A model generated the notes under the pieces. That model did not search any database and had not been told where the DNA came from. It saw nothing but the letters and a program-made list of their open reading frames with translations. This document shows positions 15,773 through 46,229 of a stretch of DNA of 64,000 nucleotides, piece by piece. Numbering within the stretch: the first letter of the stretch is position 1; each line of letters starts with the position of its first letter. This DNA is from Ascidiella aspersa (lineage: Eukaryota), in contig OZ004610.1 in assembly GCA_963924565.1 (NCBI GenBank), positions 12,772,001 through 12,836,000 of the forward strand, given 5' to 3'. A program made the translations under genes and the position numbers.

Positions 15773-18700
15773 TCACCTTTTCCTGTGGTTAACAAACGAT
15801 CGGTCTGGAGTCCGAATCACGCCCAGCGCGCCCGCGTACACCTGATTGAAAAGCAGATGGCGAAAACCGCCCGACGACGTTGAGTTGCGCAGTGCAACAG
15901 CGTCCCTGGCGGCCGTTTTAAAGTCGTGTAGCTTGCCGCACAGGGGCGCCAAAACGGCGTTGCCGTCTTCGCCCGTGGCGGCATACATGTCCCAGAAGCC
16001 GACTGTCGATTGCACTGTCAAGCTCGACAAACGATCAGAGCCTTTATCGTCCGACAGAGCCAGGTTCGCCGCCGGGAATACGCGAAAGGGCACGGGGTGG
16101 TAAAGCAGGGGTGTCGAGTTCCTTGCCTGGCCCTTACCCCTGTAGTCCAGAAAGTTATAGTTGCTATACGAGTCCGGCACCGGTCCGCCGGTTCGCCGCA
16201 GACACGACACCAACGCGTCGGCGCTCAAACTTACGTTGGGCGACGTCAGTAGTGCGTAAGGCGGCGCGCTTTTGTCGTTGGACGCCAGGTCAAGGGCACG
16301 CACGATGCCGTCGGCGTACGCACCCTGCGTCGAAGCGTCGACGTCGCCTTGCATCGAGCCCCCAGATACGGACACCATGTCGGCGGTGGGATACTTGAGC
16401 TTGTACCACTTGACGATCTCGTCGGCCGACGGGCCCGACGTGTACGATTGCTTGGCGGCGTCGCGGTCGTCGACGGCGACGGCGATCAGCGTAACGCGGT
16501 CGTTTACTTGCGGAGAAAGGAAGGAAGGCTCGTAATGGTTCCGCATGAACGACTCGAAAAGCGACGATTGTGACGTGTGCACCGGCACGATGACGTAGAA
16601 ATGGCCCTGGGGTTTTCGGTCTGCAAGACAATGGAAGGCTTCGTTTTTAGGGGCAAAAAAACGCCCGATTAGGGCTTTCGAACATAATTGTCTGAGCAGT
16701 TTTTGCCTTTTGCAACCCTTTGTAAGACACATTCAAAGTTTATTACATTACGCGTCAAAAATTGTTATTTTGATCACAATAATTTTGTGCGTTGGATTAG
16801 AAAAAATATATTTTTTGCTTAAGCACCCTAAAATTGCCATGCTACAAACTGCGAAGCGCTTCGAATGCAGAGAGAATAATTAACTATCTTTTTTACGGTA
16901 AACTGGAAAAATCCCGGATATAACACAATAGTCTTTTAAATTCGGGTTTGCAAATTCAAAGTAACACCCAATTCCAGCAATAATAGCCCAGCAGTACGGC
17001 TTTGGGTATATAAACACGCCCCTATTATTCTCTTTGTTTGCATTTCTGTATTTGTTTGGAAGAGCGAAGCTCTATGCCGACGGCAATGCACACTAGTCAA
17101 CTATAACACAGACGCCCTTGTCAATCGGAGGTTTGTTTGGCATTCAAATGTGCCCGTGATTTTTTTTGTTATTTTGGCAGAAGCGATAACCGCTCCCTTT
17201 TGTCACACAAAAATTCGCACGCAGCAAATATTTGAAAAGCGACCTGGGAATTTTTATCGGGCTGAAGTGGCCACAAAGCCCCTTGAACGTGACTGTAGGT
17301 TCAAGTGCAGGAATAAAATCTACACCCCGTATAAGTTGGCTCCATTTGCGTTTTGCTATACCATACTAATAGGGTAAAAAAGCGCTTTAGAGATGGGTTT
17401 TTCTAACACAACCTTGAAAGAGAATCTAGCGTATGCAAATCTCTACATCGGTCTCTCCAAACATAGACTATACTTCGAAATTGTAATACGGTAAAGGAGC
17501 TATATAGAAATGTTTCATACATGAAAATGAGCGGTATCTCACGATTTCTTGGACAACCCTTTAGAGCAAAACTAGGGAGACGGGACTCGAGTAAGTACCA
17601 ATTTTCGACAGTTATAATGTCACAATCCGTAAATCGTAAGGGAAGAATTGCGTAAGTTAGATTATTTTTCCCACCATATATTGTGTGTGGATAACTCGTA
17701 TGACACTCCAATGAGTGAATTGCTGTGCACCCATCAATTTTTAGTTAAGTCAAATGGACAGAACACAGGCTGTAGAGTCAGAGCCGGACTCGGGTTTTAA
17801 CCTACTCTGCAGCCTTGGTGGAAATACTTACCAACTTGGAGTGAAGGCAAATCCCGGACTCCAGTCACTTCCAGGTCTCCGGCTGGTCGTAAAAGTCGGA
17901 CTCGGCGAATCTGAGGACAAAACGCGGACCGTTAACTATAACGACTTTGCACTTTTGGTTAACATAATGGACAGCGGTAAGTTAAAAATGAACAACTTTA
18001 TTATAACTCAAACGAGCACAAAAGAAACGCAATCGTTTAGACTAGGCCTTAGGATTGAAAGTATGATAAATTACTGCATTAGAGTCTTTGTTTAATATTT
18101 TAATAATAACGACAAAATTAGGTTAAATGTTAAGCAAAAGACTGCAAATTCAGGTCGACTTAAACCTACAGTTAGGATGTTAAACGAGAGAATCCGCCTA
18201 CTTAAACGATATAAGAACGAATAAAGCTTATAGTTTTCTGAATGTAGACAATTTTTTAGATTGGCAAACAATTTTTAAGTTTTGCAAGAAATAAAAATAC
18301 GACATTTGATACCCTGGTACAGTTGGAGGTAATTTTCAGTTGAATAAAATTAAATTATAGGTCTGACAGACGGAGACGTCAGAATAAAGCTATATAAGTA
18401 GATATGGGACATACGAAACACCAAACAAACAACTGAAAAATTCCCGTGGAATAAAGTTTAAGGCGTACTAAATCATGCGGAAAACAACGACCATTATTAC
18501 CCGTCAAACAGAGAAGAAAAGTTCCACGTTATTGCGCCTTTTCACATTTCGAACGTCATTTATCGCACTACTGCGTATAGTGGGGTTCAAACTCGACTAT
18601 AGCAAAATTGACCGGAAATTGATAACATGGCGGCAGTGAAACGCGTTAACGCTTGCTGGGTCAATTTACTTTGCCCCCTGCATAGCGACATTTCGTTGTC

Positions 18701-21700
18701 AATTAGTCGAGGCCTAAAAAAGCGGTGAAACAACTATTGCAAAATGACGACGAAATGAGGCGCATTCACAAGAAATAGGGGCATCAGAAAAGTAAAAGTT
18801 AATACAGAAAGGATAAGAACAAAATTGCCAGACGGAAAAAGTTGAATTGCCGGCGACTTCCGAACGACAGGCAACAAATGCTGTACTCGCGAATCACACG
18901 TTATTCATTACGTCATCGGTTGAGTTTCCCACATAACTACAAAGGTCGCCCGGATATGGAGTGCTCGCGAAAGCGGTGATTTTAAATCCGTGGAAAGAGT
19001 AGTGATCTATATAAAATTCTAGTGACACCCGCCATTTCCGCGCGAATACCCTTTATCATAAGGTTTTCACACCTTTGAGAAAACGTCGAAATTTCAATGT
19101 TGCTTAAAAGAGCAATCCTCTAAGAGTGTAACCTTAGGGCAGTGTTTCTCAACCTGCAGTGTTTCTCAACCTTTTATGCCTTGTGGCACCCCTCAGAAAT
19201 AATAAATAGATTGCGGTACTCCAAAGATGTTTTTAGATATCTAACTAGAATGTCACAATAAGCGGAACTGGAACAACACACATCAACTCTGCACAACGCA
19301 GGAAGTTTTAATTGGATTTATTCCACTCTAATCTTACACAAAAAATTGTAAGAGTTGAGCATTCTTAAATATTCCTTTCTTAAATACATAGCAAGATTTC
19401 TTTCGTGAATGACAAATTGTTGTTAAAATGGCGTAAGCCACATTTTGCGATTTAAAAAAGAAAGATGACACAAATGGAAACCTTTTGAACACACTAAGCA
19501 GTCATGGGGAGGATAATTTTTTATTAAAAATGTTGACCAAAATTTTATGTAGCACGGTTAAAACTCAATCAAACGTGCTCAGATTTGGTTTGCAAGGTTT
19601 TTAGATACAGCCTAACAATTCCAGGGGGTCCTCACTTAACTCCGACAAAAATTGTTTTTTTGAACAACCCTACTCAGCATACAACAAATAAATAGATCAG
19701 AGAGGCCACTGGAATTCAAATTTATTCCAGAAAAAACAGGAATGCGGAAAAAAGCATAGACAAAATCCCACCTGATCCGGTACGTTGCGCTGCTTGCTGC
19801 TGAAATACACGTCGAGCAGGTAGTCGGTGCCGCGGTGCGGGTCTGACCTCAAGTAACCGTCGCTCACGTGACTGTAGGTGAACTTGGATTGCTGGGGGTG
19901 GCCGATCGACTCGTCAATGCCGGTTTCCCCGACCTGGGGGCAAAGGGTGATTGGTTAAAACGGGGCGATGTCGTTTGAAATGGTAGGTAATGATAATTAT
20001 GCTCGATCCTCACAGTGATAATATTAATGTGACCCTAATAATTTAGACAAAAAGTTATTGCCTTGGTTACGATAGCAATGACCCGAATTGTGTGAACGCA
20101 GTATACCAGGGTTCGCAGCATATCAGGGTTGTTTAGCCAATATTACCTTTTATCGCCAATAATTTTTGTTTTCATTTTGAGGTAAACTAATGTTAACTTA
20201 TCGTTTAGTCAAGCTCAATATCGACATTTGCGGCAACCACGCATCGCAATTTCATTTGATATTCGACACCTTTTATGTAGATAGGGACGAAAACATCCGA
20301 GGAAAATTTGAATTGTAACGGTTCTTTGTCAGTGTTGGTAAGCCGAACTAGATTTTTGTGGACAATTGTTTTATTGGACTGTAATCGACACCGCGTGAGA
20401 GCATTGGTACTAGATCTATCGAGCATCAGATTCAATAGGATATTGCGTAACATTTCTAGTGAAATAGTTGATTAAGTTTGCGAAAATTTGTCCAATGTGT
20501 TTGGTATGAAAAAAAAAATATATATATTTTTTAGGTAAATCGACCGTGTTTAAACAGCAGTGCTTTAAATCGTTCGCGCCCTACGACATTTGTAAAACCT
20601 TGAGCCTGTACACAATATTTTCCACAGGTTGCTGCGATATTTCACGGTTAGTGTGCAACAGAAACGCGGCTTCACCTGTTTTAGATCAGCAAGCATGTCG
20701 TTAGTGATGTCATGTGTGACGTCAGAAGGAGCCAGGTTGTACATGGAGTCGACCTCGAACGACTGCCAGGCGTTGACATGACGCAATCTGCACAAATGAA
20801 ATGAATTTAAAATCAACTTGGGATTTTGTGTTTCTTTGACTACAAATTAATGTAACATGCTATCTTGCTTTGCTTTGTTCAAAAATATAGCAAATTATTT
20901 TAGATACATTTGCAAAAACATAAAAGATTAACTGTTTGATCAATGTAAATTTGAAAAGAATGTGTTCTCCCAAGGAGTGCATTATTGTTGTTATGTATGG
21001 AATACTTTTTTATATACACCATTCGAGGTAGGCTAAATATTCCAATAATGCAAACAGCGTGAAACAGCTATTTCAATCCAAAAACAATATTATCAGAGCG
21101 TTGATGGGGATTTTATATCTAAGACAACAGCGACGGTCGGCCGGAAAAATGAGGTCTTAATGAGCCATACAAAATCGCAAAATTACCAAACACCAAACTC
21201 TAAGCGCCCTCGCGTAATTTGTGAAGTAGAAAATAAAATTAGCCAATTCCATACCATTTGTTTTTCATTTATCCGAGCTGGGACAGATTAAAAAATCATC
21301 AGAAGTGGAAAATTGTTGAAAAAGTTTAAAGGCCAGGTAAGGCGGCATAATTAAGGCGGGGGCGGTACCTTTCATGATTAATACGATTCATATCATGCCA
21401 GCAGCGTCTAAATTGCACAGGGGAGGTGTGTTGGACTTATCCAAACAAACCCAAGCTTGCGAAAACCGCCAGACCAGGGCATGGCACACGTTGTTTGGGG
21501 AGAGCTGATTTTAGCCGCTGTAACAATATAATAAAGCGACACCAACGTGGGCTGTTTAGCGTACGCATAACAATTAGACGACTTTTAAGGAGTAAGGTAG
21601 TAGCTTTTAGGGCATTGTTCTAGACAAAAGCGGTATTGTTCCGTAGTTGGGAGTTTTTTTATTCAGGTAACAGCAGTGGGTTTTTAATTTCGCCTAAAGC

Positions 21701-24700
21701 CGTGGTCCACACATCCTATTGTTACGTTTGAGTGCGAGTTAAACAAAATTATTGTATGTTGAGTCACGACTCTATAATAAGAGGGTGCAAGGTAAACATC
21801 ACAGTATAAGTCAAAGCGCCAGGTCGTACGTTTGTGGCTTATATTCCGGGACTAGAGTCTTCTCCATCGTCAGAAAGCGCTGTTGTTCCAACGGCAAAAC
21901 AACGTTGGTGCGGTCCAGGTCCTTGCCTATGGCGAAAATCTCCTGCAACAAACAACACAAACATTACAATTAGCGTATCTGGAAATAAAAAGGCATATTA
22001 AATAAGGTCGACAGAAATGACAAAAAAAACGCCGCGAGTTTCTATAAGAGGGGGTTTACATGAGCTTTGACTGAGTCAAAAAATAAACAAATATAGAGAA
22101 GGATATTACACATTGTTAGACAATGATACTTTTGAACAACAACAAATGCACCCAAGTACATTCTACAGTAATCATACAAGACTGCAGTTAATCGAAAGAT
22201 AGCATTTGATGCCAAACAAGCTTGTTAAAGGGCGTAATATAAACACAAAGAACATTTCGGTTGTTAAAGTTTACCTCAACAGAATAAAAACCAAGTCTGT
22301 ACGGAGTGAGATTTATTTCAAATTCGATGACACTATTTGCCAAACCACACGTTGAAACTGTATAGCGAAAAATAACTAAAAACGGTATTACTAAAAATGC
22401 GTAATATTTGGTCGATATCTCTACGACAATGACGATACAAGATAAAAACTTAAGAGAAATATTGAAAACATGACCCAGATCAACAAAAATTGAAAGACGG
22501 GTTTTTGGTAGGGCTTTACAAATTTCCCTTCAAAAACAGGTTTTCATGCCGTTGTGATGGCAGTCCTAAGATGTTAAATCAGTGCTTCTCAACCTATGGG
22601 TCGCTGTTTGATTTGGTTGGGTCGCCGACCGCAGTAGCTCACCTGATTGTACTAATTGAGATTGGTTCTGAGAAAGATTTCTCAATTTGGAAAATTAAGG
22701 AAGCAATAAAAATAATGTCTTATAATAATAGTTATAATTCGAAATTCTTTATGCTAATGTCATTTTTTGTTCGCTTACAAAAAAAAAACAATTGGGTCGC
22801 CAAAGCTTAATTGTCATACTTACGCTTAATATTTGGGTCGCCGCGAAAAAGGTTAAGAAGCACTGTGTTAAATGATAGCAGTCTTAAAAGATTAATGCCG
22901 GTCTTAAACGTTGTGATCGTTGCCCTAAAACGTTTATCTTCCAAAAATAACAGTAACATGCCAACAACAATCATTATTGTTAAATTATGGAACCTCTGGC
23001 AGGCGTTCAATTTAACAAACTGAAAGACGTGAAAAACAAATTTCCAAACACGTTTTTCAAGATGTGTTTCTCAATGTGTTACCGAGGTGCTTATAAACCG
23101 TTTGAGGTGGCCTTGCAAATTGGCTTAAAGCCACCCGCAGTTCTATTTGTTTGCACGTGCAGCCATGGGCGGGAAGTTTTGGTCGAAATTGCGCCCCGGG
23201 GCGACTCAAAAGTACGCAGATTTATTTCGTCAGCTAAACTTATGATGTCCGTCGTTAGCTTGCCGCAGCCCACACCGAAAAACAGCATGATCTATATTAG
23301 GGATATACGTGTGCTATATATAATGGACATGCATTTTTAGGTTTAGGCAATAAGCGTTATATATTTGTTACACATTTCAATGTGTTTTTAATAAAGTTAA
23401 GGCAACGGATTTGTAACAGAAATATACTGTTTGTTATGTACTCAAATCTAAGTTATTAAAAAATGAAATAAACATTATTTATAACCAAATTTGCACCCGC
23501 ACCCATAATATTACAAACTTTTGCCAGTACTTCGTCCAAAAGCGAACTTAACCTAATCCTAGAAGAACAAGTAAAACTCGTTTGGATCAAATTCTTTGTT
23601 TGAAAGAAGTGTGTATTTCGCCCCAAGCAGCAGCATCAGTTCCTTTTAGTAGACTTCCTACGGAAGTTAACATTCCCTACTTTGGTTCTTCACCTGCGCT
23701 CTATCAACATCAGAAGGCCGATTTTAGTGAAAAGAGCTTACTTGTGGCGGCTTTCGGCTATTTCCCTTCCCGTGAAACTGACAAACATTGTAAACTTGCG
23801 TCATCGCAGTCGAAAAGTGATAAAATGCGAACACGTCATGCAGACGACGCAGTGAAACCTTGGAACCGCTTAGCAGAAATCGGCGATTTTTACGACGTTC
23901 CAACGTTAACGGAAATGTTAATAGTTGGCAGTAATGGAAACTTTGCTTTATGTGACTTTATATTGCTTCTTAAGGTTACTGTAACCGTTTTATGGAAAAG
24001 TCGTATTAAAACATGGGTGAAGTATTTTTTCGACAACTTCACTTAATCTCTGCCAGACAATGTATAACTTTCTATGTGGAATGACATTTTAACTAACTAG
24101 TTAACTTCTGCATTAAGTGTTATGCGAATAACAAGGCATTGTCGAAAGTATTGTTAACAAAGACTTGTCCTTGCTGCATTCAATGTTATGTTGGAAAACA
24201 GTCGCAATCATGAGTGGAATTTATGCGAGTAAGTTTAAAACATTACATATTTCGTACACACGCTTTGCCTTGGCCATAAACATTCTATTTGAACAAGCTG
24301 AACTCGCAATTCGACTTGTGCCCGCGGATCCGGGTTCATAAAACGCCGGTTCTCATGCGACGATCAAGGTTTATTAGAAAAAGTCAACAAACTGCTCTTG
24401 GCTGCTCCTTGAAACGAAAAGCGAATACAGAACTTGGTAACAGACATTGCTGTGAGTAAAAACTGATTAGGAAAATTGTACAGTCACAAATGGGGTTTAC
24501 TCACATAAGTAAATCCAGAGTATTTAAATAGTTCAAACAAATGGTACCATAAAAAACGGAATTTAAAAAAATTGCGAAAATTGGTAAATAGATGTTATAT
24601 TGTGAACTGCTTTCTTGTTTATTCGGTTCTAAAAAATACAAGATAAAACAAGTTTACAAGTTGGCAGATGTTTGTTTAACTTGGGCGCTATTGTCAACAA

Positions 24701-27700: not shown

Positions 27701-30700
27701 TTCGCAAACAACAGACAACGTTAGCGTATCGGACTTAGCTACAACCAAAGGAAAAGTGCGGTTTCCTTTTTAAAATAAAGAATACTCTGCTGTAAAACGT
27801 GTGGTGGTTAGGCAGTTCAATGCCTGCTGGTTAAAACAAATTACAAATCAACGTGCATATTGAGTTTGCAAAAGTTAATCACCAGCTCTTATGGTTATAT
27901 ATTTGCCTATCTCCGAATAGGTTACATCGCGATTCCTAGGCGCTAATGCTACGCTTTGACAGAGTTTCCCATTGGCATAACTGCTTTTTAGTCAATTAAA
28001 TAACAAAGCCGAAAGTCTAATGTGTAGTTATCAAAAAAGTAACAGCGCCTAATCTATACACAACTTAAGCACAGCCATAAATGATCGCGGGGTAATTTTT
28101 GTTAAAAATTTGCATACAAATTTCGTTCCTAATTTGCATACTTTTAAAGGTAACGCGACAGCCGTCAATGACGAATACGATAATAAAGTATCGAAAAATA
28201 TCTGCCTCAAACGGCAGTAGCAAACATGGCGATACACACTGTATTGCTGAATCAACACAGCAAACACTGCGCGCATGCATTACGCGCTACAAAGACAAAC
28301 ACTCGAGATTCGGGAGGCGTTTTAAGGGCGACGGTATGTTGACCGTTGTTCCTTAAATGTGCTGCCGCTGTGTTGACTTGTGACTAACGAAATCACCTTT
28401 TTTAGCGCTGAAATTTGCACTTGGTGTAAAGAATGTGGATAAGGAGCGATTGTATAGGTGGTGCAAAATAAACAGGGAGGGCACAAATAAAGATAAAGAG
28501 AAAATCCAGTCGGGGACTTTCGAAAAAATATTAGAAGTTTGCGTAACGTCCGATCCTATATGCTTTATTTAAACGCAATGGTGGGAACTTAAGTTTCTTC
28601 GCATGTTTTCCGGTTTGCGTTGTCAAACCAGACGTTGTAGGTGGAAGTTGTGGCAGGACTTAACTTTCTTTCAGTTCAACTCCACGTTTTATGTGTAATG
28701 TGGTTTCCATTTGGTTTTAAAAATATTAGAAGTCGACACAAAAAAAAAAACAACGCAAATCTATTTTTTGGCGATCAAAAGGCGGTACAGTTAATTCTAC
28801 TATACCGCCAAAATCATGAATTCCAATTTGGCAAAATATGGAAAAAACGCACAACCGTGATGATATGAGATGCCACAGACAAATGTGTAAGTTTTAGGCC
28901 AGCCGCAAACATCATCACCGGGCAAGCAAAATGTCCAATTCCACAAACCTGAGTGGTGGAGTTAAGTAGGAGACTCGTGTAGTGGCGATGTACCCGGTAC
29001 ATGATGTAGGGCACCTTGATGTGGTGCAGGGTGAGAGCTCGACTGACGTGGTCGTTCTCGGCAAGGTTGCCCAGAAAGGGCTTCTCTTCGGTGTACTCTT
29101 CTTGGTACGAGTGGTAGAACAGCTTGAGGGTCTGCGGGAAGAGAGGGTTGCTTGACAGATTGGTAAAGCTAACTTGTTTTTTTAGCAAATTTGATCAAAA
29201 TTGATTTTCACAAACTTGCAAGTGCACAATAGGGATGTCTGATATTATCGAGGATCGGCGTCGATAAGTGATAATATCGGTTCTCTTCCGATACCAGGGT
29301 GGCATCAGCTCCGATCCGATATCAAATTAATTTCAACTTCAGCCATGATTTGCAATCTAACGTATAGCAAATCTATCTTGAAGTGTAAATATTTTGGCCA
29401 TATAACCTAAAAAAATACCTTGGACCTTTGAATTTTGCCAATTTTGCCTAGTTGGTATACATAGTAATGAGGTATTTTGGATCGGATCAAATCGCGATAA
29501 TTTTAGTCTAAACTATCGGGTCTCAGTATCGAAATATTTTAAGTATCGCACATCTTTGTGCATCACCCAGAAAGCGTATTTTAATCGATAGACAAAACGT
29601 GTGTTTAAGGGCGTCGAAATTAACTATACTCATTTCGTTTCCCGCAACTTACGGTTGCAAGTTCGTCACGAGATAAAAAAGTAAACGTACCAACTGAATA
29701 AACAAAACAATTAAAACGTGTTAATTGTTTGTTTAGTGTGTGTGTTATGGCAAGTCGGGTCAAATGTTTTGGAAATGCCCACACAGCATGAAAAGCAAAT
29801 GGGTATATTTATTATGGACGTGACGCAATAATGTGATCATCCGATCGTTCCACGCTCAAGCAAGCGATTGGCAAAGGCGGGTGACGCTAATTTTCCAGTA
29901 AATCGAAGGGATGCTGTTGCAAGCGATGACATCACAATTGGTACTGGTTAGAAAAATAACATCCGTTGATTTGTTAGGACCTGCAATGACCAATTTCTGA
30001 CCACGCATTTAGAACGGATTTGTTTGCTGGTTTCTTTTAAACAAGGTAATTAGCGGCGATTATTAATGTTAATCACTGGTTGCGCAAAAACAGAAATAAA
30101 CAAATGATCCATCTTAATCATAAGATGAAATATTTTTGGTTTGATTACTGATAAATACTGTTTGCATTGTACAAAGGTAACTAAGTTCTACGCCTAACCG
30201 AGTTGCTTGTTTAGTAGTTTCGACAAAATTACTACAGTGCAATCAAAGGACAACTGTCTGTCACCTTCTGATGTCCTATACTTACCAAATGTCATAAGTG
30301 TTGCTGTAGGTGAAACAAATTAAAACATCGAATGAATCAGCACGCTAGTTTGCAATCAAATATTACGAAAGATGACCCACAATTACTTGCACGTTAAGCC
30401 TCCGAAAATTTAATGAGTCGGGTTCCGCTATTAATAAGCACAGTATTAAAATGCTTTGTTGTGTTGTGTGTGTTTGTTTGTTTGGCCTGGTCGGTTGCTA
30501 GGTAGCCCTGACGTTCGAATGTAGCCCCAGAAATGTGTAACCAACGACACCTGTTTTTTTTTAACATCATTACTGCATTGGCGCTATGTTAAAAATAAGG
30601 AGTGTCGCCTTATCCCGCCTTAATTTGCACCATAAGGACAGTGAGTGTAACACATATTGATTTTGTTGCCCGCTACTCTCTACGCGACTGTTTGACCAAG

Positions 30701-33700: not shown

Positions 33701-36700
33701 AAAGTCAGCAAAAAACGGTGATACGACAACCTTTTGAGGACAGGAAAATAGTAGAGGCACCGGGGCGTAAAATTTGGGCAAGTTTTTTTTTTTGTGGTGG
33801 GGTAAGCCCAGCGGCTCTCGAAAATCATTGTGCAACCCTGTAACGAAACTCTCCCACCACTGAACTTCAAAAGGTCTACGTGCCGGCTTTATAACGTGAC
33901 GTATAGCTTCGTTAAAAATAGAAGAAACCTTGGGTTGTTTAGTGTTGCGAAACAACTTCTGGTCACGTTTAAAATTAGTATATACCGAACGCAAAAAAAG
34001 AAGAAATTAGGACCTGCGACTAAAAACACTTTTTGTAATTTAGTGCTACATATGAAAACATCGTATGTTTGTTTTAACAACGCATAGTTTCAATTGTCAA
34101 TTTTGTAATCAATTTTTTTTTTTTAAACACTGCGGCCAAACATTATTATTTGAAACATAAAACGCAACCAAGCATAGCAAATAACCACGCTGTCTTTTTC
34201 CAATGTTATGTTATGTGTGTTGTGGTGTTGCCAAAACACGGCCTTTGTGTCGATAAAAGAATGTCTTGGACAAAGTCGTCGGCCCATTAATAAAAGCTTC
34301 TCGGCCGAGTCGCGCAGGGCCCACCTTGTCTTGAGTCAAATTAATTTAATTCGGCTTGAACGGGTAAAATACTCGTCGGGTTTTGTTACTCAAGACATTG
34401 CAATGGAGTTACAGGGAGATTTCCCAAATTTATCTTTCACAAAAATTGTTCAAAGAGAAATCAGATAGGCACATGTCCAGATTACCTAACCATATTAATA
34501 TTTTAACTTGTTCGCACTTCAAAGCAGATGCAAGAAAAAACATGAAAACTGCAACTTTCTATAACGTACGATTAAACAGACGTCAATGATGATTCATTTT
34601 TTCAGAAAATAAAAAAAAAACGTGACGAAAAAAAGGAGTGGCGGATTAGGCATCTTATGGCGCCCAAACGAAGCAGTCGAGGGGCAAAGGAACGCTGCCG
34701 GTTAAAATTAAAATTTGCTGAAAAGGAAAGCCGGGCTATTTAAAAGAAAAAAAAAGAACCCGAATCTAATTGTACGCTCAAGACAGCCTAGTCAACACCA
34801 CACTTTGGGAAGTAAGGAATCTCCCGCAGACAATAAAATGTAAAAGAACAATTCTTGTTTTCGTATCAGTATGATCTTAAAACTGTTTATAATAACAGGT
34901 AAAATATTAAATCATTTATTAAAATTTTACACAAATATAGAAATCAGAAATTCTAGAATCAGAATTTAATTTAAATAAGAATGCCTTATAGGCGAAATAT
35001 ATATTTTCTGGAAAGAAAAGATTTTTTAGTCTTAAGATCTAGTCAACACTTTTAGGTTCAATTTTTAACCATAAGTCACCTCCCAGGCGTGCGTGCACTC
35101 GATGTGCAGGTGGTTGGTAACGCAACGTCCCAGCTCCACATCTTCCTCCTTTGACACCACCTCCTCCATGCAGTGGTCGATGTGCGGACACATTTCTGAG
35201 AAAAAATAACAATTTTTTCATGGTGTGTCTTTAATATGTATTTAGCTTTTCTAAACCGTGGACAAAATTCACCTTATTTGTTAAAACAAGTTTAAATATC
35301 ATGTTTCAAATGGCTTGTATAGTTACGATTAAACGCTGTATCTCGCCTTGATGCATGATGGTTTTTATGAAAATAAACCAACAAATGCACTTTACAACCT
35401 TATGCAATACTGCCGAGTGCCGATGCCTCCTAAGGAAACAGGGTGACGGCAGAAATATTTTAAGGCAATTCAAACTGTCCCACTCATTTGCATACGAACG
35501 ATCTTAAAATGTCAAAACAATGAAAAATCTTAGGTTAAAAGGTCGTCGTATAATTCGCGTTGAAATTCCGAGAAAAAAAAACTGTAACGGAAAAAAAATT
35601 TCGCAAAAAAATGACGACTAAACATAAGGCTAAACATGAAAACAGTGACGGCGTTACCAAATCGACGTTTTTTTCGGGGAACTGCTGCCATTTAAAGTGT
35701 GCTTCGCGCTGATTACAGTTACGCGACGGTGACGCCATAATGGCTAAACATGTTTTGTTACACCGCTACGAGGCAGGCGACTAACGACGAAAAATTTGTC
35801 CACGCGGCCGACGCGTGGTTAGCAGACCCAGTACAGAGCACGTGTGCTCTCGTTGGTCTGAATGTTTTGGTATTATAGATTATTTTGATTTAGATATTGT
35901 TGCTTTGTAGGTCTTACTGTGTGTTCCCGTAGATTTTACTAGACCAGACCGCTGAGAGCCGTTCACATTACCTATAAACCTATACAATTACAAGGCAATT
36001 AACTGACCTTACTCAAACTTGTGGCCAGTCACGTCTAGGTCCACCAAACACTATTTGCAGTCCACTCGAAAATGTCAGAAAAGATAACACGGCAATTTCA
36101 AAAATATGGTACTGACGGTTTTAAAAATAAACCGTATGTTTGCCAATAACTGTTATCATTGTTTTAACACCTTAATATAACACTTTATACTACTAAAAAA
36201 ACACGTCTTGGAATATGAGTAAATGCCATTTGCTACACTGATTTATGACCGGGCTCGCACTTTAGGCAAACAAGAAAGGGCGTAGAATTACACACAAAGC
36301 ACTGACTTAGACTCAGAGTCAGAGATGTATTGTGTCGACGGTGACAGAAGACAAACAAAGACCAAGGAAAACCCCGACAACGAAAGAAAGCTCTTTTACG
36401 ATTCCCGTGCTTTATGATAAAGTAGAAAACGTATTTGCCACGCGGCGTCTAACCGTTGCATACCACCAAATTCTTTAAGCATTTTTTATGTACACCCGTG
36501 TTTTCTTAAGCCGTTTTCGGTTTAAAGTCTGACTTGACTTGGTAAATGAACGATTTTCGCGTGGGGGCGCGGTGCGATGGGTCAATGATTAACCTTAAAA
36601 CGATATAATACGGAGTGAAACTGATTGCATAGAGACATAGAACACAATGCTGGGTGGATAATTGCTGGTGGATTTACAAAGCAAATTATCCGGAAGCGAT

Positions 36701-39700
36701 TCGGTTAGAAATTTAACACCAGTATCATATGCGTTGTGAGTTGGCGTACAAACAACCACTTTAAACCGCCTTTAGTCAGCCTCAATTCCACGCGAACAAC
36801 GTTAGTATAAAAGCAAGGAGACTCGCTAATGGCTAAATTTTGACTGAAGAATTCCGCTGCTCACCTGATTGGTATGACAACCAGTTTAGGACGTAAGAAA
36901 CACATGTGTACAGTGGAGTTGAAAAATGCACGAAAAAAATGTTTCAGTTTTAAGGTGAGTAAGCCACTATTGGAAATGTGTAAATGCCATTACCCATTGA
37001 CGAGCTAATTATTCCAGAAGCAATTTGCTAATCTCCTACGATAACTGAGTCATATGCGACCTTTTACGGTGGGTTTGATAAATAACATTGATATTTATAG
37101 AACGGCGAAAACAAATATAAGTTTCATCGCTTTGCTGCGGTCGAACATTAAACTCAATCGAACATTAAACACAAGAAGGTGGATTAGTCATTATCACGCA
37201 GTAAATTGGCACGTGCTGTAAATTAAACACTTCTGGTTATTCTAAAATACTTCAGTTTGCCTTTTTTACACACCACTTCTTAATGATTACGATTTAATGG
37301 TACGACAACGAACCTAGCATAGCTCTCCTGTTGAACAGCACCCCGGGACCGCCCATGCAGAAGTTGTGACCGTTCAGACCAAGCTTTTCGCGGACTTCAG
37401 GCACTCCGTGGCCCGGCTGGCCCATGTAGATCTGAAACAAAACAAGTGGAATTTAAAATATGAAGTGCAGTGTGGGAAGCGATCGTTTTAATGTTTTGAG
37501 ATATGACATAAAACGTTTTTTAGTCTCCAGTAACAGAATATAGTTCCTAGCACAATATGGTTGAGCGTTTTTACGAACCCCATATTAATAAACAGGTCGT
37601 GGACAGCACTCAAGTTTGAATCTATTAAACAAACCTTGGCCTAAAACTTTTTCATAAAACAATGCTGTAAATATTTAGCAAAATGTTCAGGCGAAAAAAC
37701 TAGCAAAAAAACCGGGGCATACCATTTGCAACATTTTTTTGCTTTTGTTTTTGTAACCAAAAACCTATAGTATCGCGCAATACATTCAACCCATTTCACG
37801 CAAACTTTGTTTGAAATAACGACGTAAGTACATAATTATAGTTTCTATCGCCGGTAAAATGTTTTCGGTGCGTATTACAAGTCACTAAGGTGATTTCAAC
37901 ATAATTGCTTTCTTTGCCAGAAGTCCGAGACTGACACACTTTGACGCAGTAAACGTAAGGAGAAGGGGACAGAAAATTGGTTTATTGTAATGGCGGAAGA
38001 AATGGAAGAAAAGAACAAACATTCCTGTTTAACAATGGCATAACTTTAAACAAACCGAGCGAACAAAAGAAACATGGTCGTCTATTACATGCTCATGAAA
38101 GCCATTTGAAGTTAATAACGAGTAATTTATTTGACAAGCGATTCGTTCAAAAATGACATTGTTGCTAACTAACAAAAATTATGAAATTTTGCATAGATCA
38201 TGTTTGCGTTCGGTTTTCGGGGTGCTTAGACCGTTCGCATCAAAAAGCAGCGAAGTTTAATTGTTAAAAAAATCTTTTTTACATAAAGTAGCCAGTGTAC
38301 GTTCTTGATTTTACAGAAAACTATCAGGACAAGATCGGACAAGTGTAAATTATTTTTCTGCAGAAAACCTCTTTTTCAAAAGAATGCCAACTTCGCGTAA
38401 AAAAAATATATAATATAATATATAATTAGGTCTCATTGCGATTTGTATGTTTATTTGCAAGGCTGTTTCACAACAAATCTATCCACACAGCGAACCAGCA
38501 AGAAACGAAGAGAAAAGCTAATAGTCGAAATATTGGACGGGATTTTTTTTAAATAGTGGCCCGAACAGTTTTGTTTTGTAATTTAAAGCTTATCCTCAAG
38601 ACCTCAGATTCAATCTGATTTGAATTCCTGTTAATAACACACAAAATACGTTTAGACGGCGTCGATGAATAAAGGGAACAGAGTTTAACAATTGATACCG
38701 CAGGGTACGTTGAAAAACTGACAAAAAATGTTTTTGGGTAAATAATGCTTGCCCCAAAGCTCAACGTGCGCCACCTGCTAAATTATGGAGGCACAAAAGC
38801 GAGCGGCCCAAAATCGATGCGGCGTATTTTGGCACACAAGAAATTATGCGTCAAAGTACGCTAAAAGCACAATGTGCACAAACGGAGGCCTGTTTTCCAG
38901 ATGGCCGATAGGTTTAAAGAACGGGTTTGCCGCTTCACAACGCCCTGACGTATATGTAGCACGATAACAACGGCAGGTAGCCAGGTCACTCGAAACGCAT
39001 GGGCGGTCGTGCGCGACCGATCAACGAGCCACTTTTATTCGATGGCCGGTTTTCGTTTTGTATGAGGTGAGCTAATATTTCGAGGCACAAAAGGCATGAC
39101 GCAATGCACGTTGATTATAACGTAGGTGATTTTATTTCACGCCGCGGCGTCAAATACCACACAAAATATTCTCGCAATGTAAACGATTTTTCCACAAACA
39201 ACTTACAAGCGATTTCAAATGAACGTTCCAGAATCCAGACCTTGTACGAATTTCGTTGTCCAAAAAAAGGGTTAAATTATTATCAATAATTAAGTTGGAA
39301 ATTACTTTGAAAACAAAAGTGTTAAAAATACATTCGACAAATTAGCATACACTTTTTGTTGCCTTTTACTATCACAGAGCTGTGCAATTTCTTAAGGATC
39401 ACAATTCACAGCGCTTTTGAAAATAAATAAGATACACTGGGATTATTTTTAGTCGACCGGTTGAGCCACGTAGCCTATTATAAGGGAAATTCAGCGGGTC
39501 AAACGAAACGTCGTAAAAAAACGTTTTACGACGGCTGAAAAAGCGAAGTTTTTATGGCTTTGAATGATTGGTGAAACGCCCGACTTGCGGTTAGTGTCGA
39601 ACCAACATGGCTGTGTTCACAAGGCATAATGATGTTATTAGTTTCTTTATGGCCAACTTCCGAGCATTGACGATGTTTGTGATTTTTGCCAAGACAACGG

Positions 39701-42700: not shown

Positions 42701-45700
42701 AAAAGCACGTTTTAAGTGCCGGGCGAAAGTCGACAAAACCTCAAAGTGAGCTCCACCAATGTGAAGCGGACTCTGTAGTGCTGTTCAAATAGCATTGCCA
42801 CTGTTGTCTTATGCAACGAAATACCAAGTCATATGAAAGTGCGATGTTAGCAACCTACAGTCCAGCTGACTGCGATCCACCTGTCGTTATATGGCCTACA
42901 AAATAGCGTAACATTTTATTGACTCGTCAGCAAATAAATGGAAACGCAGTAAAATGCACTTGGCTTTCTAAGCGAACCTGATCCTAAATTACGCTTCGAA
43001 TCTGTTTTGCACGCGAGCACAACAGAAACTAGACGCTGTTTTGGGGCAACGCTGTGTAAACAAGATGTTGTATGTGCTGGTAAAATATGGTACAGTGAAC
43101 AACTAAGCGACACTGAATCGGGTTGAAAACCAGCCGAAGGCTAGACAAGTGTACAGCGGAAAGAGACGGAAAATCGATAATTTGGTTTAGATGTGCGACA
43201 TCGCACTTAGAATAAGATCTAACTAAGGGAAATTTCGTTTTGTTTTTCAGGTTGTTTTTCTACGACGTTTAGCACCTTAAATGCTATTGGAGGTCAATGG
43301 GGTGCTGTAAAAGTGCTTTGACCAGCAACCTCAACCCGCGTCAATCAATTTTGCACGGACACGGTGCTGTTAATTGTCTGTAATTAATCGCAATTGTTTG
43401 CCGCGATAGACAAATGGGGTAAAATGACGCGAGCAACGGTTGGCGAATTTTGTGGTCTTTTGAGTCTTAAACTTTACATAGGGAACAAACAAAGCGATGG
43501 CCCGCACCGCTCAGACAACAAAACAGTCAGTCGCTAGTGGGTAAACGGTTAAATCGTGAAATAATTGTTACAGTTTCGGTCGTTTAAAAAACAAACGCAC
43601 GCAAAGGACACCACAGAATACATCAAGTGGGATCTTCTTTCTACGTAGACTTAGCTTTAATGGAAGTTTAAAAACCTGAATAAGAAAACAATAAAACTAA
43701 AAAGTTCGCGATGGTTGACCAAAATCGCACTGAACAGATTCTATGCTTCTTACGCAACAAAGAGTGGGAAGCAGTAAATACCATCCTTATACAAATATAA
43801 CAAAAATGCCGCCGCCTATTGGTAACAGTCTATTGGAAAAACAGGAAAAAAGATTCAGTAAAACATAGAAGCAAGCCAGTATCCAAGGTCACGAAACAAG
43901 GCAAATGAAGTCTTTTCACAAAAACGGCCCCCCAAAAAAACAGTTTAAAATTATCACAATGGTGAGCGAAAAGAACGTACCATCTTGTCGCCATCGATTT
44001 GCGACAGAAATTTGCGAAGTCTTTCCACTCTAATGTAAACGTCGTCGTCGGCCCGGATAAACCACTCGAAGTTATCCAGGTGGTGTTTGCAGATGTGCTG
44101 CAACAAAATGTATGGATTGATGGATTTTGGGCACGCTTCCATATCGTGCAAAAGTATCATATTGGTTTGGGTTGGCGTAACATAAAAACAGACATGCACT
44201 GTTCGAAAGACAGTGATTGATCCAAGGTATCGATAGGCATTTTTTAGATACAGCATCGTTTAGTTACAATGTGTGTAAGATCACGGGCCATGATTATACA
44301 TGCCTAAAACTTCGCATTTTATTCCTGGATGGATACGCGATACTTTACGCAAAAAGTACGGCCGCCTGACGTAATTACTTGAATTGGACGTTAACAAAAA
44401 ATCGAATTCTCCATTTGCTAATAGCATAATACCTTGAGCATGGTAAACATCTTCCTTTGTGGCGGGTATTCCGTGTCACTTACGCCGTCCAGACTGACAA
44501 CTGGAACGTGGTATTTGTCAGGAGATCCGTTGGCCGCGAAAAACTCTAACTTGTCAACCTGCAAGACATGAAAACAAAAAACGAAATAAAAACTTCGCGA
44601 ATCACTAAGGATGCAGCTGTAAGAAACAAATCCAAAAGCATTTTAACTGAAAACTAGAAAGCTAAGTATATTACTTAACTGCGTAAACATAATCGTTATA
44701 TTTAAACCGACGATCAAAAAACAGTTTAAAAAATCGTTTTGTTTGTACATTGGTGAGGTTCTCACAGATTGCTGCTTTCATGAACTTGGAGCGTAAACAT
44801 AATCGTTATATTTAAACCGACGATCAAAAAATAGTTTAAAAAATCGTTTTGTTTGTACATTGGTGAGGTTCTCACAGATTGCTACTTTCATGAACTTGGA
44901 GCATAAATATGTAAGTTCCGAGTACACTACTTAGGTTACGAGTCCTTTGTAAGTTGTAACCCCTTTGTAATAGAAAACATATTTTTTTCTTAGAAGGTGA
45001 AATAGGCAAAGGTGACTTCATAACGCAAAAAGTAAAATGGCTGATCCTCTCGTTGCGTGCGCAGTAAAACGAGGCATGTGCAGCTATAAATTTCGCAAAT
45101 CACACATAACGAAGCCGATAAACGCGTTGACGCCCCACACAATATCTCGAAAAAACGAGAGGCCGGTTTCGCCGCTTACAGCTAAAAGCTTGAAATTGCC
45201 GCTGAGGATATTTCGAAGAAAAAAATCATGTAGCTTTACGAACGACCATGCGGAGGGAATATGTCTCAGTTATCTGCCTGTTAATAATTAATACATAACT
45301 AGCAGGCGCACCCAGGGTCGAGCTACAAAATCTATAAAGCAGCAGGAAAAGGGTAAAACCTGAAAATAACAATAGGGTAAACTCATAATAAAAGGCGATA
45401 GGTATAAGAATAAATAGCGTAAAGGGCCTTAACTATTGCGTTTAACGTAAGTTAACAAATTAAAAACAAAGCTCGGACCTGGGTTCCCCACGTGTTGTTT
45501 ACGGCCACAGACCGACTGGTCAGGAACTTCTCTGCCGTGATGACGCCAACAAATATCCGCGTTTTTAAGCGCACCTGGTTTTCCGCCTGTGAAACAATAA
45601 AGAATTGGTAAATTGTTTTTTGTCCATGACGTATTTTAAAGCTAATAAATTTTTTGTCAAACCTTCAAAATAATAAATAATACTAGAACCCAATATACAT

Positions 45701-46229
45701 GCACAAATTCACAAAAAGTCAATAATCAGTCACCGAACATTAATATTATTTTCCGAAACAACACTTTCTTCCGTTAACATAAGCCTTGTCGTACGTGTAC
45801 AATATGCCTTTTACGAAATGCAAGCACAGTCGCATGCTGGCTACCAAAAGCTTAGCAAGCAAAAAGATCAATAAACAAATGAAAGGATTAGCACAGTCAC
45901 GGGTGATTAAACTACCATTGGTTAAGTACCTCGGCAGAAGAAAAGCTGCTTTTCTCGGGAAATTCTCTGTGGTCTAAGTGCTGGTGAACCGCACGCACTG
46001 AAAGTGCAGTGGACGGCTCTAAAGTGTTAATTGCATCCACGTCGTGCTTGCTATTGTTTTGGGAAAAATCCTTGGCGAGCAGCGACTTGGCGCCTTCGGT
46101 GGGCCAGGGCATCGCGCTGCGGAAAAGTACATGCTGCTGAAACAGGACGGCCGTAATAGTTATCCCCACCAGGATACCCCAGATAAAGGGAATCACGATC
46201 TGGCGCTGGCGGCGGTAAATCTTGCCCAT
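15773..46229 (-). CDS. CHSY1-like: Chondroitin sulfate synthase / chondroitin polymerizing factor family glycosyltransferase (CHSY1-like N-terminal domain, CHPF-like C-terminal half), 12 coding exons, about 793 aa
   Basis: Exons 46229-45930, 45586-45479, 44558-44433, 44097-43981, 37431-37314, 35195-35080, 29131-28949, 21942-21830, 20787-20676, 19933-19772, 17910-17832, 16620-15773; all GT-AG and phase-consistent. Type II anchor RRQRQIVIPFIWGILVGITITAVLF. Motifs IFVGVITAEKFL, YPPQRK, FEWFIRADDDVY, NFCMGGPG, EDVELGRC, ALTLH, GYLRSDPHRGTDYLLD, YKLKYPTADM. The start may lie further upstream (ATG 46676). Confidence 0.92.
19140..19195 (+). mobile_element. hAT MITE left end with a tandemly duplicated TIR
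   Basis: CAGTGTTTCTCAACCT occurs twice (19140 and 19157), followed by ...GTGGCACCCC. I did not find a matching right end. Confidence 0.55.
22580..22865. mobile_element. hAT (Charlie-like) MITE, 286 bp
   Basis: TIRs CAGTGCTTCTCAACCT and AGGTTAAGAAGCACTG. Perfect TSD TGTTAAAT. Internal TGGGTCGC repeats. Confidence 0.93.
29230..29557. mobile_element. hAT-like MITE of the TAGGGATG family, 328 bp
   Basis: TAGGGATGTCTGATA...TATCGCACATCTTT. TSD gtgcacaa/gtgcatca (6/8). Many ATCGG/CCGAT subterminal repeats. A related left end occurs near 51414. Confidence 0.75.
31859..31916. repeat. 16-bp minisatellite, about 3.6 copies
   Basis: Units aactaaaatatagctt, aactaaaatagagctc, aactaaaatatagctc, then partial agctaaaata. 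Confidence 0.85.
31952..32903 (+). mobile_element. Internally deleted SPIN/GTF2IRD2-type hAT transposon, 952 bp
   Basis: Perfect 14-bp TIRs CAAGGGTCTCAAAC and GTTTGAGACCCTTG. Perfect TSD CTCTAGAT. GCGGCCC subterminal repeats. Contains transposase remnants. Confidence 0.95.
32367..32736 (+). pseudogene. Transposase remnant: N-terminal zinc finger joined to the C-terminal tail
   Basis: ERKFFQDRWEELYFVTAVRGASYCLICRQKIAVMKKYNKGLHFETMH resembles the SPIN/GTF2IRD2/EPM2AIP1 C2H2 finger. Stops follow, then HLQATLRFVSADNLKPNIEVLVDKRCQ*, which resembles the family C-terminus. Confidence 0.85.
39905..40077. mobile_element. Old short hAT MITE
   Basis: CAGTGATTCTCACACT...CTTCGAGAACAGCTA, degenerate TSD tacaagag/tactagcg, internal GTACCC repeats. 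Confidence 0.55.
44681..44900. repeat. 110-bp tandem duplication (2 copies) in intron 2 of the glycosyltransferase gene
   Basis: 44681-44790 and 44791-44900 differ at only two positions by eye. Confidence 0.95.

Follow-up and report, generated by a model that had tools for sequence, protein, structure and literature searches.

The chondroitin polymerases of humans are CHSY-CHPF heterodimers in which CHSY carries both active sites and CHPF serves as a catalytically dead stabiliser, as described from structures reported in 2025 and 2026 (PMC12748766, PMC13389171). The question of how such a dead partner arose is raised by a gene on the minus strand of a 64,000-nucleotide stretch of the genome of the ascidian Ascidiella aspersa (GenBank assembly GCA_963924565.1, contig OZ004610.1, positions 12,772,001 to 12,836,000; hereafter the window, with positions numbered from its first letter). 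An earlier note, made from the DNA alone, had read the product of this gene as a mosaic, in which a CHSY-type catalytic N-terminal domain was joined to a CHPF-type C-terminal half, and as possibly a third kind of subunit. The analysis reported here indicates that it is likely to be the single-copy ascidian member of a conserved sub-lineage, termed CL, whose products are predicted to be subunits of a heterodimer that add glucuronic acid (GlcA) only, and whose motifs are mostly retained ancestral states.

The gene comprises 12 exons with a coding sequence extending from 46676 to 15773, and encodes a 942-aa type-II membrane protein in which a long cytoplasmic tail and a transmembrane helix are followed by a GT31 domain, a bridging helix, a cystatin-like middle domain and a C-terminal GT-A domain. 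The combination of GT31 and CHGN parts in one type-II membrane protein is the architecture of CHSY and CHPF, and was evident from the Pfam matches of individual exons (Fringe/GT31 in the N-terminal part, CHGN in the C-terminal part), the transmembrane helix of exon 1, and matches in the PDB. The joined 942-aa model was deployed for local alignments and trees only, searches and folding having been conducted with single exons or with orthologues.

The two catalytic sites and the C-terminal fold

The two domains of human CHSY3 add different sugars, GT31 transferring GlcA and GT7 N-acetylgalactosamine (GalNAc) (PMC12748766, PMC13389171). The residues of both sites, as defined for that enzyme (PMC12748766), were mapped by way of PDB alignments onto a 53-row alignment. 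The window protein was found to retain all nine residues of the GT31 GlcA site (the counterparts of CHSY3 R187, D231, Y233, K238, D261-D263, H394 and K397), as did all 13 other CL rows covering these positions. None of the CHPF rows kept the full GT31 set: the DxD motif reads S/Q/Y-D-H/D/Q/N, R187, Y233 and K238 are lost, and H394 is lost in most rows.

The state of the GT7 GalNAc site was very different, the window protein retaining only one of its nine residues, P626. Seven others (R630, R697, D718, D720, E806, D807 and H831) are replaced, and H834 lies beyond the end of the protein, which stops right after the ...IRTPDRSF strand. The position of the GT7 DxD motif reads S..N (LLTSPNVSL), and the FSRG, GWGxED and HxxH motifs, together with the two-Cys tail, are absent from exon 12. 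The C-terminal HxxH/two-Cys tail, retained in CHSY, CHPF and CSGALNACT, is absent from all CL rows; its pattern ..FRAVEP..C....C..S..LA occurs in all CHPF rows and in no CL row. The GT7 site is degenerate in both CL and CHPF, and no member of CL gave a PF02709 match, unlike the canonical CHSYs.

An AlphaFold2 model of exon 12 (pLDDT 80, pTM 0.81) was compared with the PDB using Foldseek, which placed CHSY3 first (E 2e-9 and 1.9e-8) and CHPF next (1.4e-7 and 1.6e-6), all with template-modelling scores of ~0.5; the best chains were those of 9o4g and 9q8z, followed by many GT-A enzymes. On the strength of this model, the exon 12 domain can be predicted confidently to retain a GT-A fold though its GT7 site is dead. 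A PDB sequence search with exon 12 alone gave no match at E<=1, and its look-alikes in the ESM Atlas comprised only unnamed bacterial and viral clusters, nothing of which was usable.

Comparison of the ascidian and hemichordate members of CL gave an identity of 60% in the GT31 domain and 18% in the GT7-like part. The invariance of all nine GT31 residues and the short GT31 branches, set against the decay of the GT7 site, indicate that the GT31 site is under strong purifying selection. CL represents a natural half-dead state, with one site constrained and the other decayed, that bears on how the dead partner of the chondroitin polymerases arose.

Phylogenetic placement of the separate parts

The GT31 domain of the window protein shared 44% identity with CHSY and 25% with CHPF, the middle domain 20% and 21%, and the GT7-like domain 18% and 15%, so that the C-terminal half is equally far from both families (15-21% identity). 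No CHPF was present among the matches listed in protein searches, and a mixed query combining the hemichordate member of CL (P0033) with the CHPF exons of the Ascidiella genome, which aligned poorly as fragments, likewise yielded none; CHPF rows were obtained instead from metagenome contigs, in which DNA encoding the CHPF motif NGYxRFDPxRGMEY was sought by means of a degenerate pattern. Those used, besides the copy from the Ascidiella genome, were a full-length invertebrate transcript (L035), an ascidian transcript (L042), fish-like exons (L036 and L044-L046) and the N-terminal part of a second invertebrate gene (L038). Short invertebrate exons (L037, L047 and L048) and contigs with an ascidian-like genomic exon (L039, L041, L043, L049 and L050) stayed outside the trees. 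A further CHPF fragment (L040, Ga0126362_10007248) matched the human CHPF chain in the PDB and, being taken as human or mammalian DNA in the metagenome, was left out of the comparisons.

Trees were constructed with IQ-TREE under LG+C20 PMSF. The GT31 tree separated CHPF from all other sequences (97/96), and CHSY plus the CHSY-like sequences (CHSYL) from CL plus CHPF (98/100), with CL central on very short branches. Both CL (100/99) and CHPF (100/98) were recovered as clades from the C-terminal half, and CHSY (99/99) and CL (99/93) from the middle domain. When Fringe and B3GLCT sequences from the same genome were added to the GT31 tree as outgroups, CL was excluded from the CHSY clade (96/85) and from the CHPF clade (99/99). 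Every part of the protein thereby placed CL outside crown CHSY and outside crown CHPF, and a recombinant origin is opposed by this single placement of all parts: the discordance between the halves on which the mosaic claim had turned did not appear in separate trees of the GT31, middle-domain and C-terminal regions, each of which gave the same three-way arrangement.

The proposal that exon shuffling or gene conversion had joined a CHSY N-terminal half to a CHPF C-terminal half drew on short matches to human CHPF in exons 7-11 (LNSTTQEI, RRVRLLRP, GY.R.DP.RG..Y.LD) beside CHSY catalytic motifs in exons 2-6, and the CHPF strings that it cited (LERTYQEI, ADVADVLGTALEE, GYRRFDPARGMEYTLD and RRVQLLRP) are present in the aligned PDB chain of CHPF. 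However, RV.L.RP (RRHAYLQQ in canonical CHSY) and GY.R.D..RG.[DE]Y.LD recur in the CSGALNACT-type sequence P0080 and in the C4:11.7 Mb gene of the Ascidiella genome, in neither of which is the middle domain followed by a long linker; since these states are shared with CSGALNACT-type relatives, the CHPF-like motifs look ancestral, and it is canonical CHSY that seems to have changed. Active GT31 enzymes likewise have in common the catalytic motifs that were read as CHSY-type in exons 2-6. With its C-terminal half no nearer to CHPF than to CHSY and the CHPF tail missing, the description of that half as CHPF-type was not upheld. Matches in the PDB pointed the same way: the GT7 domain of the hemichordate P0033 matched human CHSY3 (30.7 bits) with no match to CHPF, and the model of exon 12 placed CHSY3 chains slightly ahead of those of CHPF. 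A recent recombinant is ruled out, the clade being common to three phyla; as hemichordates, amphioxus and tunicates share the architecture, the event would have to be very old and leaves no discordance to be detected, and a mosaic origin is considered exceedingly improbable.

Members and distribution of the CL clade

The nearest relatives of the window protein were ascidian proteins of Phallusia, Ciona intestinalis (XP_002131640), Clavelina and Styela, and CL as a whole is a clade of ascidians, amphioxus and hemichordates, together with two metatranscriptome proteins. With the full-length metatranscriptome homologue P0017 as the query, tunicate proteins came first among the matches listed, followed by proteins of 689-718 aa from hemichordates (Glandiceps, Ptychodera) and amphioxus, which covered most of the query; canonical CHSYs appeared only after these members of CL, and matched the N-terminal half alone. 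PF02434 and PF05679 are recorded for the CL orthologues, of which P0009, P0017 and P0027 are transcript-derived, and hemichordates carry canonical CHSYs beside CL. P0017 and P0027, full-length members of 728-730 aa from JGI marine metatranscriptomes, grouped with ascidians on long branches and may originate from pelagic tunicates.

A full-database HMMER search with exon 12 found 17 relatives among 1.84 billion representatives, with no canonical CHSY or CHPF among them. Those checked by name or sequence were ascidian or unnamed homologues, save the repeat-rich and evidently unrelated P0013. So small a number of relatives shows that the C-terminal part evolves fast; a protein homologue search with the C-terminal half of the hemichordate P0033 returned only itself, Ptychodera and one weak match.

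What can be concluded firmly is that CL dates back at least to the divergence of tunicates, amphioxus and hemichordates, and that it is distinct from both named families. Only CHSY and CHPF are recognised as metazoan groups in PMC8022947, the only evolutionary study found, and no description of a third CHSY/CHPF lineage or of the CL clade was found in the literature searched. CL accordingly appears to be an undescribed, half-active sub-lineage of a known family, the orthologues of which are public at NCBI under the names "chondroitin sulfate synthase 1-like" or "3-like", names implying a bifunctionality that the CL sequences cannot support.

Predicted function and partner

Conservation of the nine GT31 residues, taken with the mutagenesis of CHSY3 (PMC12748766, PMC13389171), points to a putative GlcAT-II activity. 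The window protein, a Golgi-type, type-II membrane protein, would then add only GlcA, in beta-1,3 linkage to GalNAc. By analogy with all studied members of the family, it would probably form one half of a heterodimer by way of its bridging helix and cystatin-like domain. CHSY requires a CHPF partner, CHPF and CHPF2 being needed though inactive, and the CHSY-CHPF dimer is formed through bridging helices and cystatin-like domains, with basic patches on CHSY facing acidic patches on CHPF (PMC12748766, PMC13389171). The net charge of the cystatin-like part was -6 in the window protein, -4 to -8 in ascidian CL, and -2 and -7 in ascidian CHPF, compared with +10 in the CHSY of the Ascidiella genome. 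This acidic, CHPF-like character, opposite a basic CHSY, hints weakly at a pairing of ascidian CL with a CHSY-type protein.

A degenerate GT31 site, a criterion for CHPF and CHPF2 (PMC12748766, PMC8022947), is not a feature of the window protein, and the Ascidiella genome contains half-dead CL, fully active CHSY and fully dead CHPF side by side. The earlier suggestion of a third kind of subunit consequently stands as far as lineage and architecture are concerned, given an intact GT31 site, a dead GT7 site, and the separate canonical CHSY (C1:25.54 Mb) and double-dead CHPF (C5:3.48 Mb) of the genome, but not yet as far as function is concerned. The coexistence of these forms makes three questions testable: whether a single subunit can act as partner and catalyst at once, which features of the interface decide pairing, and how chondroitin is assembled in invertebrate chordates.

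Origin and activity: alternatives weighed

The age and distinctness of CL leave its sister group to be considered. With Fringe and B3GLCT as outgroups the root of the GT31 tree fell in its unresolved centre; a scan of the genome with PF02434 recovered Fringe, B3GLCT and many Fringe-like exons, with no clear C1GALT1, the nearest GT31 outgroup. Approximately unbiased (AU) tests were conducted on the GT31 and middle domains. A single clade of CL plus CHSY gave p values of 0.33 and 0.27 respectively (log-likelihood differences of 1.4 and 1.3), and one of CL plus CHPF p values of 0.26 and 0.16, while nesting of CL among the deuterostome CHSYs was rejected with the middle domain (p 0.0007) but not with GT31 (p 0.25). 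The positions of the introns are of little further help. One intron, ahead of exon 7, is common in position and phase to the window gene and to the CHSY and CHPF of the same genome; a second, following exon 9 (Q|V, phase 0), has its counterpart in the CHSY but not in the CHPF, and a third intron of the window gene lies 2 nt from a CHSY intron.

On balance, a CHSY-side origin is placed slightly ahead of an origin on the stem of CHPF. In the former case CL would have arisen as an ancient sister or by an early duplication of CHSY, and would have lost its GalNAc-transferase function independently of, and in parallel to, CHPF, a tentative reading to which we would give somewhat less than an even chance: it accords with the far higher GT31 similarity to CHSY, with PDB scores that favour CHSY3 (230 bits against 123 with CHPF for the Phallusia mammillata orthologue P0028, and 270 against 101 for the hemichordate P0033), including a GT7-domain match to CHSY3 only, with the leading position of CHSY3 in the Foldseek comparison, with the intron shared with the CHSY alone, and with an AU test that does not reject the grouping. 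Nevertheless, none of the trees places CL within crown CHSY (96-99% support) and its nesting among deuterostome CHSYs fails on the middle domain, the high similarity may merely reflect shared catalytic constraint, and a lineage known from deuterostomes only does not sit well with a divergence that predates crown bilaterian CHSY. That CL is instead a survivor that left the CHPF line before that line lost its GT31 site, and so an intermediate that would be both a GlcA-transferase and a CHPF-type partner, is favoured by the separation of CHSY (with CHSYL) from CL plus CHPF that is seen in both halves (98/100 in GT31, 95/85 in the C-terminal half), the acidic cystatin-like domain common to ascidian CL and CHPF, and the absence from both of the GT7 DxD and of the long linker that follows the cystatin-like domain in CHSY; the AU test does not reject this grouping either. 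Yet the split is uninformative without a root, dead domains may be drawn together artificially in trees, the shared features look ancestral in being present also in CSGALNACT-type rows, the decay of GT7 differs in detail (CHPF keeps the tail that CL has lost), and the Q|V intron is shared with the CHSY of the genome rather than its CHPF, which leaves the stem-CHPF origin rather unlikely. A more specific form of it, in which CL survives from the transition of a two-site synthase into the dead CHPF and stabilises a CHSY-type partner through its acidic interface while adding a second GlcA site, is less likely again; if true, it would imply an invertebrate deuterostome polymerase with a pair of GlcA sites to a single GalNAc site, or a division of labour like that of EXT1/EXT2. 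That the GT31 site too is inactive, and the protein a scaffold or chaperone in the manner of CHPF, has a precedent in CHPF and CHPF2, needed but inactive (PMC12748766, PMC13389171), and in the loss already of one domain, GT7; it is nonetheless judged highly improbable, because the nine GT31 residues have remained invariant across tunicates, amphioxus and hemichordates while GT7 decayed freely, and the short branches and high identity of the GT31 domain relative to the GT7-like part bespeak strong purifying selection.

For the reading that is preferred here, of CL as a distinct sub-lineage of predicted GlcA-only subunits, there are several points on the other side of the scale. The tests above reject neither grouping of CL and, on GT31 alone, do not reject its nesting among deuterostome CHSYs. 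Apart from the copy in the same genome, the CHPF rows came from metagenome contigs of unnamed species; the CSGALNACT-type outgroup rows were few and fragmentary, the upstream middle-domain exons of the CSGALNACT-like genes of the Ascidiella genome not having been found by tblastn, which left the outgroup thin. The fast evolution of the C-terminal half makes long-branch and dead-versus-active-domain artefacts possible in its tree and in that of the middle domain. CL was seen in three deuterostome groups only, among the matches listed in word-limited searches. Nine conserved residues neither prove GlcA transfer nor fix its acceptor, and the partner role, like this activity, is putative. The middle domain of hemichordate CL is not acidic (0 to +7), so that the charge pointer is not a general one, and a complex prediction combining a hemichordate CHSY (P0084, 45-460) with the CL protein P0033 (91-490) scored 0.20 against a mark of 0.34, a value that speaks neither for nor against binding. 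Lastly, no splice junction was covered by three RNA reads, the depth being too low.

Gene structure and expression

The presence of a multi-exon CHSY/CHPF-family gene at this place on the minus strand, as the earlier note had proposed, was confirmed by 12 collinear exon matches when P0028 was used as the tblastn query on the window. Exon junctions were placed by eye on the DNA and then checked by script, which found GT-AG boundaries at 11 of 11 introns, consistent phases and no internal stop. P0028, the nearest public protein (Phallusia mammillata, 919 aa, named "Hexosyltransferase / chondroitin..."), shared 62.7% identity with the window protein over its full length.

Exon 1 (45930..46676, aa 1-249, with its GT donor at 45929) encodes the cytoplasmic tail, the transmembrane helix (IVIPFIWGILVGITITAVLFQQ) and the stem. 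The gene had been thought to start at 46229, an ATG that is probably internal; the start codon is more likely that at 46676, as MLNPSS... aligns with the Phallusia N-terminus MHNPSS... and the reading frame is open upstream of 46229, a change that adds a cytoplasmic tail of ~150 aa. The GT31 domain begins in exon 2 (45479..45586, aa 250-285; RIFVGVITAEKFLTSRSVAVNNTWGTQ; Pfam Fringe 6-36), where the motif-I Trp and the residue corresponding to CHSY3 R187 are found, and continues through exon 3 (44433..44558, aa 286-327; ...SDTEYPPQRK), with the counterparts of D231, Y233 and K238, exon 4 (43981..44097, aa 328-366; Fringe 85-114), with the DxD motif WFIRADDDVY that corresponds to D261/D262/D263, exon 5 (37314..37431, aa 367-406; GQPGHG...NFCMGGPGVLF) and exon 6 (35080..35195, aa 406-444), in which motif V reads EEDVELGRCV and the CHGN profile begins (1-36, E 1.6e-9). 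Exon 7 (28949..29131, aa 445-505; CHGN 35-94) contains the end of the GT31 site, LTLHHIK, with the counterparts of H394 and K397, and the beginning of the bridging helix, which together with a linker occupies exon 8 (21830..21942, aa 506-543).

The cystatin-like middle domain extends from its first part in exon 9 (20676..20787, aa 543-580; VNAWQSFEVDS...ADLKQ) through exon 10 (19772..19933, aa 581-634; GYLRSDPHRGTDYLLDVYF; CHGN 199-224) to its end in exon 11 (17832..17910, aa 635-661; IRRVRLLRPAGDLEV), and exon 12 (15773..16620, aa 661-942 plus stop; CHGN 260-376, 22.8 bits) encodes the degenerate GT7-like GT-A domain. All of the N-terminal-half motifs that had been quoted previously were located, namely FVGVITAEKFLTSR in exon 2, YPPQRK in exon 3, WFIRADDDVY in exon 4, NFCMGGPG in exon 5 and EDVELGRC in exon 6, as were LNSTTQ|EI across exons 7/8, ADLKQ|VGETGIDE across exons 9/10, GYLRSDPHRGTDYLLD in exon 10, RRVRLLRP in exon 11, and YKLKYPTADM, RALDLAS and DFKTAAR in exon 12.

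The 308-Mb assembly contains a single copy of exon 12. RNA-seq data from the same species gave low-depth reads over exons 9-12, exons 9 and 12 included and with the highest depth of the stretch examined over exon 10; there were hardly any over the introns, and the reads had one mate orientation, indicative of a single strand. An ascidian-specific pseudogene is ruled out by the open frame, the conserved orthologues and the RNA reads. Within the intron between exons 11 and 10, at 19100-19500, the DNA contig word depth rose from ~100 to 45,000-75,000 and RNA reads lay on both strands with many loose ends, features of a very high-copy intronic repeat. In the intron between exons 12 and 11, the few RNA reads at 18100-18300 carried around five mismatches each, and probably belong to another locus or to a related repeat, not to the window gene.

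Other members of the family in the genome

A scan of the whole assembly with the CHGN profile detected ~13 loci belonging to four classes. A canonical CHSY at C1:25.54 Mb exhibits RADDDIY, HEDVELSRC, RRHAYLQQ, FFCDVDVVF, GWGLEDVDL and HVYHP. Five or six two-site CHSY-like paralogues, with both sites intact, are located at C2:20.14, C1:40.47, an inverted pair at C5:24.79/24.80, C4:2.78 and probably C1:30.40 Mb. The true CHPF, at C5:3.478-3.493 Mb, is degenerate at both sites (YDWYYLTSDQTY, TPDKWLGKC, LVNGYKRFDPQRGMEYILDL, HRVNLLRP, FMLTSVAANMNLNFLNRC). CSGALNACT-type genes, recognised by the same profile, were found at C2:38.6, C5:27.5 and C3:23.9 Mb, with a dead-site variant at C4:11.7 Mb. Since the genome thus has its own canonical CHSY, CHSY-like paralogues and double-dead CHPF, the window gene is a separate member of the family.

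Several of these loci merit individual description. In the canonical CHSY, the junction between exons E and F (L021/L001; C1:25,544,9xx-25,545,4xx) yields the canonical ...IIMQ|VMQMMN... only with a GC donor, CAG|GCAGGT, the alternative GT donor inserting AGFSLY; this may be a GC-AG intron. The additional CHSY-like genes (L002, L004-L006, L013, L014, L026, L028, L029 and L003+L084) have the GT31 DDD and the GT7 DVD, GWGLED and HxxH motifs intact, form a clade of their own beside canonical CHSY (100/99), and look like a tunicate expansion of two-site synthases. The CHPF (L033 and L032; C5:3,475,000-3,493,100) consists of at least 14 small exons, and an intron before the region equivalent to the last exon seems to coincide with the start of the last exon in the fish-like CHPF contigs. 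The C4:11.7 Mb gene (L007 and L008; C4:11,687,205-11,692,192) is of the CSGALNACT type, its transmembrane helix leading directly to the middle domain with no GT31; its GT7 DxD reads TEDV and GWGxED is lost. The gene, which trees place with CHPF at the end of a very long branch, may encode a second, independent dead-GT7 protein. Tandem arrays of dozens of Fringe-like exons of the WWCHFDDDNYVNV type were recorded at C2:28.69-29.14, C7:11.675-11.707, C2:9.39-9.42, C1:23.53 and C1:1.86 Mb, a large Fringe-like GT31 expansion; a lone single-exon Fringe (C6:25.245 Mb) and a B3GLCT-like gene (C5:32.417 Mb) are also present.

Comparison with known systems

In EXT1-EXT2, whose GT47 and GT64 families are unrelated to GT31 and GT7, each subunit has one active and one inactive glycosyltransferase domain. 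CL resembles such a one-active-domain subunit, a working analogy only. Glycosaminoglycan polymerases other than that of chondroitin have been described as heterodimers of multi-domain paralogues with domains that have lost their function (PMC13389171). Within the chondroitin family, the CSGALNACT1/2-type proteins share with CL the cystatin-like middle domain, a GT7-type domain recognised by the CHGN profile and the ancestral middle-domain motifs, but they have no GT31 domain, and in most of them the GT7 site is active (DVD, GWGGEDV, HxxH).

The likeness to CHSY1 and CHSY3 (human CHSY3, PDB 9o4g_A and 9q8z_B) extends over the whole order of parts, from the type-II transmembrane helix through GT31, bridging helix and cystatin-like domain to the C-terminal GT-A domain, and includes the nine GT31 residues and the 44% GT31 identity, CHSY3 being the best PDB match by both sequence and fold. 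CL nonetheless differs in keeping one of nine GT7 residues, in having neither the HxxH/two-Cys tail nor a long linker after the cystatin-like domain, in the acidic rather than basic middle domain of the window protein, and in lying outside crown CHSY, in a genome that has its own CHSY. With CHPF and CHPF2 (human CHPF, PDB 9o4g_B and 9q8z_A), CL has in common a dead GT7-like domain, the ancestral-type motifs RV.L.RP and GY.R.DP.RG in the middle domain, a cystatin-like domain that no long linker follows and that in ascidians is acidic, and possibly a partner role. CHPF, however, has lost the GT31 site that CL keeps and has kept the C-terminal tail that CL is without; with a GT31 identity of only 25%, CL stands outside crown CHPF in a genome that carries a separate CHPF.

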